Shown here piece by piece: positions 9,690 to 13,304 of a stretch of 64,000 bases of DNA. The position numbers and the translations under genes are program-made. The DNA comes from Adineta vaga (taxonomy: Eukaryota; Animalia; Rotifera). The stretch spans positions 12,834,001 through 12,898,000 of the forward strand of contig CP075493.1 of assembly GCA_021613535.1 (NCBI GenBank). The letters run 5' to 3'. A model generated the notes under the pieces. It saw only the letters and a list, made by a program, of their open reading frames with translations. It did not search any database and was not told the origin of the DNA. Every line of letters begins with the position of its first letter. Position 1 is the stretch's first letter.

Positions 9690-11636
9690 TTAACGTCGCT
9701 GATAAAACCGTACCCAATCAATTTCCATTCGACGAGGAAAAATACTGTCATCGATTCCTTTTGCACCACCCCTAAAAAGCACACAGATATTTTTTCCCTA
9801 GATATTCATACATTTATCTCTTCATCTTTATCTTTCTAAATCATGTCATCTCATTCTAACGTTTGGAATGTTTTAGTCAATATTGATGAACTTACCAATT
9901 ACCACCTACAGCAATGTTCATTACAATAAAAAATGGTTTATCAAATGGCCTAAGAAAAAATAAAAAGTATTTTTATCTTAAAAATTGATATTCTACCATT
10001 TTGTCCAATCGCCTTCATTTTTATAAGTAAAGATTCGATCAGCTAATGGATTTGCATCGTCTCCAACATATGTTTCAATTTTATCCACATCCCAATCAAG
10101 TGTGTAGATTTTAAAATGCGAAACAGCATCATTCACAGTTACGGACTTTGTTTTCTGAGTATTTATCGCGTGATTATGAGCTTTTGTATGTATCGAAGAA
10201 ACTATACTTGTTTCATCAAAACCTACTTGTTCCATTATATCAATTTCACCATTATCTGGCCAATACTGATCGCCATATGTTTTACTTGCTGGCAACTACA
10301 GTTTATTATATAGAGATTCGAATATATGACCTCATTCAAAAGATTACCATCCAAAGTGCGGGCCATAATCCACGACCTTTGGGTAATTTAGCACGAATTT
10401 GCACACGACCATAGGTCAAAGTAGTTTTACTAAGAAGACGAGCTGATGTATATTGTTGATTTTCCATTTTCTCCTAAATATATAAAGGTATATGTACATG
10501 ATATGTCGTTTTCTATTCATATACTCGATGTGCTTCGATAATAAGACGACCATGATTACTGCCTGGAAATAATTCACAACGTGCATTTTTCAAACGATTA
10601 TTTGTATAATATTGTAATTCATTGTTGCCTAAAGTTATAGTTTACATATACATATAAATATGAATAATGCACACAGAAAAGAAATAATTATTTGAATGAA
10701 AAAATTCAAATATTTACCCCAACCATTTCCACCAACATCAAATTTCCATTTTTTTGAGTCGACTTGACCCTCCGAGTCAAAATTATCTTCCCATACTAGT
10801 TTCCATCCGTTATTGGCGTGACCTTAAATAAAATATGTTTGAATATGAGCAACATGATGTAACCTGGCGTTTACTACTATAATAATGCTAACATTGGCAT
10901 TGAAGATTATCAAAGCAAGAACATTACCTATTATACGTATTAATGTGAAAAATTGTATCTTTCTCAATCATAGTGAAGGAACTTTTTTCTGATTTTTTTA
11001 AATAATTTGTTTCTAATTGGTACGGTGAACCATCTTGTGGTAGTATTATTTGTAGAGAAAAAGAAAGGAACTCCATAATTGTTAGACAGAATCTGTTTCA
11101 CCTTACGACCAACTCAAGATTAACTAATTCTATTTTAAAAACATCTAAGATATTTACGTGTTCGACGTTGCGAATGTTGACTAAGAGATCTGGACTGACT
11201 GTGTGATCTGGGCCGACTGTGAGATCTACGTCGACTGTGTGATTTACGTTGACTGTGAGATTTAGGTCGGCTATGAGATCTTCGATGGCTGTGTGATCTA
11301 GGTCGACTGTGTGATCTGGGTCGACTATGTGATCTAGGTCGACTGTGTGATCTGGGTCGACTATGTGATCTAGGTCGACTGTGTGATCTGGGTCGACTAT
11401 GTGATCTTCGACGTGAGTCACGCTGAGATTTCGATGATCTGGTTTTGGAACCTTCATAAAATATTTCAGATGGATAAAATAAATAGATGTTTGTTCGTTT
11501 TACCTGCCGAGTTGTGCTTATGAGATTTGTGAGATGATAAAGTGGAATTTTTTGGTCTCTCGTGCTCTTCATATCTCTTTTTATTAGCAGTCTTTTGATT
11601 ATTGTAATTTTCTGGACTTGAATCGTAGCCACTCAT
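9690..11636 (-). CDS. Arg/Ser-repeat N-terminus fused to GH16 beta-1,3-glucanase (laminarinase-like) domain
   Basis: Exon 1 (11636-11504) and exon 2 (11451-11158, RSHSRP repeats) end in phase 1, matching the phase-1 acceptor at 10822 (WKLVWEDNFD). GH16 motifs: GWGNNELQYY, YTSARL, LPKGRGLWPALWM, intact catalytic GEIDIME, PFDKPF, MEIDWVRFYQ. Stop at 9690. The GH16 call is firm; the fusion is inferred. Confidence 0.8.
11195..11410 (-). repeat. 18-bp coding tandem repeat (about 12 units, partial 36-bp higher-order period) encoding RSHSRP
   Basis: Alternating gatctaggtcgactgtgt and gatctgggtcgactatgt units. Confidence 0.9.
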
Positions 11637-11679
11637 GTCGCTAACAATGTTGTGATGAAATCGAATGTGAAATATGCAT

Positions 11680-11775
11680 AAAAGTACGTTTTATACTTAT
11701 AAAAACATGGGAGAAAAATCGACGTGCATGCAAGTACTGACGTCATGAAAAAATTTCCCGTGATGAATCATAAAT
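11680..11775 (-). promoter_or_regulatory. Promoter block of RS-GH16 copy 1: TATA, CRE, kB-like and AP-1-like motifs
   Basis: TATAAAA on the minus strand near 11690-11696, TGACGTCA at 11738-11745, aaatttccc at 11751-11759, tgaatca at 11764-11770. The block is recognisably conserved at 13348-13440. Confidence 0.55.
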
Positions 11776-11835
11776 GAAAGGTAAACGACACGTGTGCGAA
11801 GGCAGCTGGAGAAGAAAGAAATTTTAGTGTTTTTT

Positions 11836-13304
11836 TTATTGGGCGAGTGAAACAAATTTGAAATGAATGGTGCATACCCAGAATCTGCATGGTGATCCAT
11901 CTGAGATCGCAACTACGATGTGAAATACTAATATCACCCGGATCCACACCCACACCCTCGATTCCTTGTATACCATCCCTACAAAATCAGATATATTTTT
12001 AAAGTACATGTATGCATACAAATTATTTCTTCAACGTTATCTTTTGAATCTATTTTTTCTCTTATCTGATTGTTTAAATTTTGAGAATTTAAGTAGAAAT
12101 CAAATTCAGATGCTTGACTCTTCTTCATCTTGCAATACGGATAAACTTACCAGTTGACAAGCACGGACATACCCATTGCAAGATAAAAAGCTTGATCAAA
12201 TGGCCTAAAAATATAATTAAAAAATATTTTCATCTTTACAAGTTGATATCCTACCATTTTGTGGAATCGCCCTCTTTTTTATAAGTAAAGATAGATGTAG
12301 CTAGAGAATTATCAGCATCTCCAACATATATTTGAATTGTATCTTCGGTCCAATCCAGTGTGTAAATTTTAAACTTCGAAACAATGTCATCCACAATTAC
12401 AGAATTCGTTTTAGGAGCACTTATCGAATAATTATATGCTGCTGTCTCTATTGAAGAAACAATACGTGTTTCTTTGACACGAGCACCACGGTCTAGACTG
12501 ATAATGCCATTAGCCATAAAACCTTTAGTGTATGTTACTTTTTTTGGCATCTACAAAGCATTCGATAGAAATCGAACCATGAGTTTATCAAAATATTATT
12601 ATCATCTGAATTCCAGCACACAATCCACGACCTTTGGGTAGTTGGGCACGAATTTGCAAACGGCCATAGGTCCAACTAGCTTTGCTAGTAAGACGAGCTG
12701 AAGTATATGCATGTTCTTTAAAATCCTCCTACATACATGAAGACATATATACGTAAGATGCCTTTTTCTCTTACTTACTTGATGCGCTTCTATAATGAGA
12801 CGACCATTCTTACTACATGGGAATAATTGACAACGTGCGTCTTTTAGTCGATCGCGTGTGTGATACACCCTCTCTTCGTAGGGTACTTCTATAACATAGA
12901 CAAACATACATATAAGTGCTCATATAAAGGAAAAGTTGGACTATTTACGGTCGCAATCTGCACCGTATTCGAATTTCCATTTTTCAGAATCAACTGAACC
13001 ATCCCGATCAAAGTTATCTTCCCATACAAGCTTCCATCCTTTATTGGTATCTCCTAAAATAAAATAAACATGAATATATACATGATACTATGATTTGCTT
13101 GGGAAAAAAGATTACCTGCTCGACTGTGTGACCTACGTTGACTATGCGATCTTCGTCGACTGTACGATTTATGTCGGCTATGTGAGTTGGATCGACCACG
13201 AGAGATCTCTCGACTATGAGATCTACGTCGGCTTTGCGATCTTCCAGCTGATACTTTAGTAGTCGATTGACCATTATAATTTCTTTTGAATTAGACGCGC
13301 TCAT
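11836..13304 (-). pseudogene. Tandem paralog of RS-GH16, catalytically dead and disrupted
   Basis: The RS exon splices via intron 13054-13115 to GDTNKGWKLVWEDNFD. GEIDIMEQ is replaced by GIISLDRG. There is a 1-nt frameshift at 13284-13287 and a splice donor changed from GT to AT at 12602-12601. The 3' end is approximate. Confidence 0.75.

Follow-up and report, generated by a model that had tools for sequence, protein, structure and literature searches.

A tandem pair of genes on the minus strand of Adineta vaga contig CP075493.1 carries a GH16 beta-glucanase sequence behind a repeat rich in arginine, serine (RS) and histidine. The pair occupies 9690-13304 of the window, the whole stretch of 64,000 nucleotides (nt) that was analysed; it corresponds to C1:12834001-12898000 of the 100.8-Mb assembly with six contigs in which all genome searches were made. 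The region has a G+C content of about 30% and short introns. Copy 1, the member of the pair at 11636..9690, is fairly probably an RS-tailed GH16 fusion gene, in which the ancestral 5′ exon has been replaced by a new module that is spliced onto the enzyme exons, and the fusion probably represents an exon swap specific to the lineage. Among animals, bdelloid rotifers are the best-known case in which many genes have been acquired from microbes, and a link to antifungal defence has been made for their GH16 genes. The locus would show how a foreign enzyme can be rewired after its arrival, the enzyme exons and their acceptor being kept while the exon for secretion and the PAN domain is swapped for a new promoter and a coding minisatellite.

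Copy 1 is modelled as eight exons from 11636 to 9690 (-), with 398 codons open without a stop and introns that are all GT-AG (52, 335, 89, 51, 52, 47 and 124 nt from 5′ to 3′). The ATG at 11636 sits in its own 133-nt exon (exon 1, 11504..11636), which holds the ATG and 44 polar codons and occurs nowhere else in the genome; its phase-1 end lies at the donor CAG/GTAAAA (the slash marks the exon end). Intron 1 (11452..11503), of 52 nt with GT-AG ends, has no counterpart in copy 2; it is required because the ATG would otherwise lie outside the RS frame. Exon 2 (11158..11451, 294 nt) contains the RS/His-rich repeat, an 18-nt tandem array at 11187..11407, and is symmetric, with phase 1 at both ends. 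It ends at 11158 with the donor CAC/GTAAAT. The 335-nt intron 2 (10823..11157) leads to the first GH16 exon (10718..10822, 105 nt), which begins at 10822, in phase 1, after ...tatttaag. The remaining GH16 exons are located at 10525..10628 (104 nt), 10348..10473 (126 nt), 9997..10295 (299 nt), 9896..9949 (54 nt) and 9690..9771, the last of which carries the TAA stop. An earlier note on this DNA had described the RS repeat and the glucanase as separate open reading frames (ORFs) with phase-1 ends at 11158 and 10822; both points hold, the RS ORF running over 11135..11632. The start exon and the 52-nt intron had been overlooked.

To identify the enzyme part, exons were searched singly, and the joined copy 1 translation was used for local alignment, tree and rate tests. 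The GH16 profile PF00722 is matched above its curated cut-off of 22 bits by exon 5, which is GH16 exon 3 (E = 2.2e-6, 27.7 bits), and by exon 6, which is GH16 exon 4 (E = 2.3e-7, 30.9 bits). The nearest solved structure to exon 6 is the Rhodothermus marinus laminarinase 3ILN (E = 8e-20), and the best match of this exon among 1.84 billion representatives, at 58%, is from Rotaria, most of the other inspected matches being bacterial GH16 at about 45-55%. Over the whole GH16 domain, copy 1 is 52-56% identical to bacterial GH16 enzymes and 71% identical to P0159, an A. vaga paralog with a signal peptide and a PAN domain. Since profile, structure and library matches agree, copy 1 is assigned to the bacterial-type GH16 family of Nowell et al. 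2024. In that study bdelloid GH16 genes are listed among those that were horizontally acquired and that a fungal pathogen induces (Nowell et al. 2024, PMC11258130), and their top matches are to Rhodothermus beta-glucanase (PMC11258130). By homology copy 1 is a laminarinase-type GH16 protein of bacterial type, with predicted hydrolysis of beta-1,3(-1,4)-glucan.

The domain of copy 1 begins at the usual W-x-L-V-W, and its catalytic E-x-D-x-x-E motif is present as EIDIME (10247..10230). The earlier note was right to call this motif intact and the signal peptide absent. Of the 75 columns that are at least 90% conserved in an alignment of 23 homologs from rotifers and bacteria, copy 1 agrees with 73, EIDIME and the conserved Trp included, while copy 2 deviates at 29. 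When both copies are compared with four PAN-clade proteins at sites where these agree, copy 1 has seven unique sites and copy 2 has 56 (chi-square 38, p = 7e-10). The GH16 domain of copy 1 is, by these comparisons, under strong purifying selection, which would imply that copy 1 is expressed and translated.

The first GH16 exon of copy 1 has no ATG and an in-frame TAA lies right before its acceptor, so that translation requires a coding exon farther upstream with a phase-1 end; the next Met occurs only 72 residues into the domain. The acceptor of P0159 agrees with that of copy 1 both in phase and in position, which is five codons ahead of the W in W-x-L-V-W, and in the annotated gene it joins a coding exon for the signal peptide and PAN domain to GH16 over a 207-nt intron. 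GH16 exon 1 of copy 1 equals exon 2 of P0159 in size, phase and acceptor, and all six GH16 exon sizes are common to the two genes (105, 107/104, 126, 299, 54 and 79(+3) nt). The corresponding intron is missing in the paralog P0167. Judged from this comparison of gene structures, the GH16 acceptor of copy 1 is ancestral. A relic of the PAN exon was looked for near the locus and none was found.

To what the acceptor is joined in copy 1 can be narrowed down from the donors. Among 18 family introns, 17 have a GTA donor and one has GTG. When all upstream ATG-initiated frames that reach a phase-1 GT are listed, GTA-type phase-1 donors occur only in the ORF from ATG 11636, at 11504, 11248, 11230 and 11158. 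The sole other candidate upstream is a mini-exon of 15 hydrophobic codons within intron 2, which starts at ATG 11076, encodes MEFLSFSLQIILPQD and ends at the phase-1 donor ATG/GTTCAC at 11031. If GH16 were translated from this mini-exon, the enzyme would be secreted by way of a short leader resembling a signal peptide, and the RS ORF would be either a small gene of its own or a leader farther upstream. The phase of the mini-exon fits 10822, and it is moderately hydrophobic, even though its maximum Kyte-Doolittle value of 2.01 falls short of the 2.2-3.3 of real paralog signal peptides, and it lies in intron sequence that is missing from the 62-nt intron of copy 2. Its GTTCAC donor, however, departs from the GTA or GTG found in 18 of 18 family donors, hydrophobic peptides arise readily from AT-rich non-coding DNA, and translation from it would leave unexplained the purifying selection on the RS frame, the ATG-RS-GH16 layout shared by the two copies and the conserved promoter before ATG 11636. 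Such an origin of the enzyme is therefore improbable. The sequence of intron 2 is unique in the genome, which rules out a transposon insertion as the source of its length; its likeness to the homologous introns of copy 2 and P0159 is limited to the 3′ end.

The fusion of copy 1 depends equally on whether the RS frame is read as protein. The array is a true tandem repeat with a period of 18/36 nt and about 12 units, and the exon codes for 13 units of the form (R/K)-S-H-S-(R/Q)-(P/R). In these 13 units both Ser positions are invariant despite synonymous TCA/TCT and AGT/AGC changes, position 1 is always R or K, and position 3 is H in all but one. The opening 108 nt consist of three exact 36-nt copies, so the array has expanded recently. 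The array of copy 2 is weaker, with about seven degenerate units at 13120..13244. Two frames are open across the RS array. They were compared between the copies over an ungapped block of 131 nt that is 72% identical. In the RS frame there are 16 synonymous and 20 non-synonymous differences, with a ratio of non-synonymous to synonymous rates (dN/dS) of 0.31 and a synonymous excess (binomial p = 0.01), so that the RS frame, by this test, has been under selection. The alternative frame (DHIVDP/VD) has four synonymous and 32 non-synonymous differences; it is ruled out as coding, being out of phase with GH16 and having a dN/dS of 2.83.

These rates also bear on whether the RS exon is included in the main product. 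Exon 1 ends at a phase-1 donor, CAG/GTAAAA, that is compatible with 10822, and the length of the RS exon is a multiple of three, so that exon 1 could join GH16 directly to give a protein of about 300 amino acids (aa) without the tail, the RS exon being an optional cassette or mostly unused. Skipping as the main outcome is nevertheless unlikely: the synonymous bias of RS-frame divergence indicates that the exon has been translated over evolutionary time, and copy 2 carries its start region and RS array together in one exon, from which the tail cannot be skipped.

The tail has an extreme composition. The repeat exon is 34% S, 30% R, 14% H and 8% P, with a net charge of +33. Residues 1-142 of the predicted protein have an isoelectric point (pI) of 12, a net charge of +36 and a grand average of hydropathy of -2.4. 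There is no signal peptide in copy 1, because these residues contain no hydrophobic segment; the maximum Kyte-Doolittle nine-residue mean of the N-terminus is -1.16, compared with +2.2 to +3.3 in the paralogs that have signal peptides. R and S together make up 64% of the repeat exon, and the 142-aa tail contains 23 RS/SR dipeptides that are separated by His or Pro and are never consecutive. A Pfam search with exon 1 and the RS exon gave no match, RRM included. The tail is RS-like in its predicted composition, but it is not an RS domain of the SR-protein kind, since it has neither an RRM nor consecutive RS dipeptides. The 14-3-3 mode I skeleton is R-S-x-pS-x-P, and the basophilic-kinase skeleton is RxRxxS. 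Copy 1 has eight RSxSxP matches (in the unit RSHSRP) and nine RxRxxS skeletons (RPRSHS), and this fit is only a lead from the sequence.

A genomic source for the 5′ module was sought and none was found. A donor gene elsewhere in the genome is ruled out, as the module is unique in it, the tail matching only copy 2 and an unrelated RS-rich ORF. Public proteins of 53-170 aa gave no relative of the tail. In the genome, just one further RS-like coding sequence matches it, a pair of adjacent ORFs at 794-1974 of locus L015 (G000:C1:11687384-11688564). The first of these has Cys/His motifs and a sub-threshold match to the PBZ zinc finger (E = 0.004), and the second has a 230-aa Arg/Ser-rich stretch of the RSQSRGRS type, which seems unrelated to the tail by descent.

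Copy 2 has a similar arrangement but is not equivalent to copy 1. Its 5′ exon (13116..13304) ends in phase 1 at 13116 and is followed by a 62-nt intron (13115..13054), so that the same junction in a paralog, to which the earlier note had drawn attention, is present. The GH16 exons follow at 13053-12949, 12888-12779, 12728-12603, 12550-12255, 12204-12151 and 11978-11768, with no internal stops. Blocks of 135 nt immediately before the two ATGs, at 11637..11771 in copy 1 and 13305..13439 in copy 2, are homologous and 73% identical (z = 15.7 against shuffles), and the likeness stops abruptly farther upstream (z = -1.2); these 135 nt are the only duplicated sequence upstream of copy 1. This promoter block carries TGACGTC and TATAAAA-like elements in the copies; in copy 1 it contains TGACGTCA together with the TATAAAA-like elements. 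The N-terminal starts are also homologous, with MS..S..ENYN.Q.T common to both. Since both the promoter block and the start are shared, the layout of ATG, RS array, phase-1 donor and GH16 predates the tandem duplication. The extended frame of copy 2 ends at a TGA (11770-11768) where the promoter block of copy 1 begins, so the two units abut head to tail without a spacer.

Even though the junction occurs in both members of the tandem pair, only copy 1 is an intact enzyme gene, and the description of the locus as two copies of the fusion has to be qualified to that extent. Copy 2 has lost the catalytic motif and has IISLDR (12505..12488) in its place. ATG 13304 is out of step with the RS/GH16 frame, which is open only from 13290; the offset falls within about 13279..13292, where a gap of 4 nt relative to copy 1 appears in the alignment. 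AT stands at the donor that follows 12603 (12602/12601), and the stop is lost, so that the frame continues to 11768. None of these four lesions had been noticed before. On the other hand, its 262 GH16 codons contain no stop and its indels are all multiples of three, against a neutral expectation of 7.5-10 stops (P < 0.001). An old plain pseudogene is ruled out, the frame being too well kept. Copy 2 is probably a fast-evolving, catalytically dead duplicate that was coding for most of its history and was recently inactivated.

The GH16 family of A. vaga is found at no fewer than seven loci, which are the tandem pair, C1:9.67 Mb, C6, two on C3, and C4. The C4 (P0167) and C6 paralogs have a signal peptide only, the C1:9.67 Mb paralog (P0159, I4U23_003111) has a signal peptide and a PAN domain, and a C3 paralog (P0171) has no signal peptide and a C-terminal fascin-like/DUF7910 domain. 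The two GH16+fascin-like paralogs on C3 (L010 / L005, G000:C3:15228182-15236190) are about 7.7 kb apart in opposite orientation; together with the tandem pair in the window, they point to repeated local duplication of the family. Other bdelloids add further combinations: P0271 of Adineta steineri joins thaumatin to GH16 in 619 aa, and P0160 of Rotaria sp. Silwood2 has a DED-like region (33.1 bits, Pfam cut-off 35.9) before a GH16 domain with altered catalytic residues (GAMNLIE). To judge from these protein sequences, GH16 is apparently a module that has been shuffled in bdelloids. The place of copy 1 within the family is differently indicated by two kinds of evidence. The shared intron points to the PAN clade, but the protein tree puts copy 1 beside the bacterial outgroup (support 87/91) and not inside that clade. 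Copy 2 has a branch length of 1.8 in this tree, and its position is unreliable.

Several observations weigh against copy 1 being a working fusion gene. Public protein searches (139-653 aa; 53-170 aa) gave no protein from the locus and no RS+GH16 protein from any organism, an RS-rich stretch was found in none of 349 fetched relatives, and other bdelloids yielded no ortholog with an identity above 71%. Intron 2, at 335 nt, is the longest in the family. The 14-3-3-like RSxSxP pattern is not conserved, as copy 2 has none of it, alongside three RxRxxS skeletons, and copy 2, the paralog that supports the junction, is itself damaged. More widely, RS+GH16 was not found in about 5.8 billion public proteins or the searchable literature, no member with this architecture was found among the proteins of A. 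vaga, A. ricciae, A. steineri, Rotaria and Didymodactylos, and a search of metagenome contigs gave no relative. The earlier note knew of no described protein with this architecture, which agrees with these searches of public proteins, those of rotifers included. Public protein coverage is incomplete, since the intact C6 paralog is likewise without an A. vaga protein among the matches.

The same absences could mean that the whole pair is silent or dying, as a 5′-truncated duplicate of a PAN-GH16 gene beside a minisatellite, whose fusion is never made as protein. The lack of an annotated public protein from the locus, the several lesions of copy 2 and the lack of an ortholog elsewhere would all fit. 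However, copy 1 keeps all its splice sites in addition to the 73 conserved positions, copy 2 has changed eight times more, the stop-free frame of copy 2 is itself unexpected in a neutral sequence, and the public set is incomplete, as the missing C6 protein shows. A silent pair is accordingly given a small probability. The in-frame fusion of RS tail and GH16 in copy 1, as proposed in the earlier note, gains indirect support from the phases, the strength of the donor, the selection in the RS frame, the ancestral acceptor and the promoter block, all of them features of the DNA itself.

The proposed fusion could have arisen from a duplicate of a PAN-type GH16 gene that lost its 5′ exon, coding for the signal peptide with or without the PAN domain. 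This duplicate would have gained a new 5′ module, made up of a short promoter, the 44-codon polar start exon and a 1-1 exon derived from an 18-nt minisatellite, and the module would splice into the old phase-1 GH16 acceptor. The predicted product is a protein of 398 aa with a pI of about 10.5, no signal peptide, a disordered N-terminal tail with a charge of +36 and a complete catalytic domain. The absence of a classical signal would keep it out of the secretory pathway, and the tail may be a phospho-regulated or polyanion-binding targeting module; the earlier note had proposed that it may set the location of the protein or bind anionic microbial surfaces. A more specific proposal can be made only tentatively and is itself doubtful: an intracellular glucanase of the cytoplasm or nucleus, held or routed by phosphorylation of the tandem basophilic-kinase/14-3-3-type sites in its expandable (R/K)SHS tail, switchable by splicing of the 1-1 exon, and acting as an antifungal effector or glucan sensor that combines a bacterial enzyme with a minisatellite exon of de novo origin. 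The tissues of A. vaga are largely syncytial. If the protein is made, it would be a glycoside hydrolase that lacks a secretion signal and has an RS-like tail, probably regulated by phosphorylation, and the question becomes what task a beta-glucanase performs when it does not enter the secretory pathway. Without expression, the locus would be no more than a decaying chimeric duplicate.

The closest known relative in gene structure is P0159. Its GH16 domain has the same intron positions, phases and exon sizes, and the same bacterial-type ancestry as that of copy 1; in place of its signal peptide and PAN exon, copy 1 has the Arg/Ser/His repeat tail. The earlier note took animal GH16 proteins to be normally secreted. 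This expectation is weaker here, as the bdelloid family is bacterial-type and includes a clade without a signal peptide, P0171 of A. vaga, P0169 of A. steineri and P0165 of Rotaria socialis. Because this clade is conserved over three genera, a non-secreted GH16 protein is not unique in bdelloids. Its members start at the domain (MSxxxYRLVWEDNF), have the extra C-terminal fascin-like/DUF7910 beta-trefoil and carry EINVME, with Asn for the middle Asp. In copy 1, by contrast, a low-complexity sequence is added at the N-terminus, and EIDIME is preserved. Rhodothermus marinus LamR (3ILN) shares with copy 1 the catalytic motif, the conserved Trp and the domain boundaries, and the domain of copy 1 begins where the signal peptide of the bacterial laminarinase ends. 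Unlike the bacterial laminarinases, copy 1 has seven spliceosomal introns, no signal peptide and a basic tail of 142 aa.

RS domains, which SRPK/CLK kinases phosphorylate and which direct proteins to nuclear speckles, are typical of the SRSF family, whose members have one or two N-terminal RRMs; enzymes with RS tails include the CLK kinases and PPIG. Copy 1 resembles SR and SR-related proteins in part, through a low-complexity Arg/Ser-rich stretch encoded by a length-variable repeat, but it has no RRM or RNA-processing domain and its unit, RSHSRP, includes His and Pro. No homology of the tail to SR proteins was found. Antifungal recognition by a GH16 fold in animals is known from the GNBP/beta-GRP proteins of insects and crustaceans, and copy 2 has likewise lost its catalytic residues. 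The GNBP/beta-GRP proteins are secreted members of the animal GH16 lineage with a CBM39 at the N-terminus, whereas copy 1 is of bacterial type and catalytically intact as judged by its motif. CBM39 and a signal peptide were looked for in copy 1, and neither was found.

Two other ORFs in the window have recognizable features. On the plus strand at 3786-4196, about 5.5 kb from the glucanase pair, an ORF of 136 aa has a hydrophobic N-terminus, followed by an acidic middle part and a Cys-rich C-terminal domain that matches the Pfam family Gamma-thionin (defensin-like; E = 1.2e-5, 25.9 bits against a cut-off of 25.1). This ORF is a possible antifungal peptide gene. On the minus strand at 18739-19839, an intronless ORF of 366 aa contains FG-GAP/VCBS-type repeats (PF13517, E = 3e-63); it looks like a repeat protein of bacterial type, and its gene too may have been acquired.

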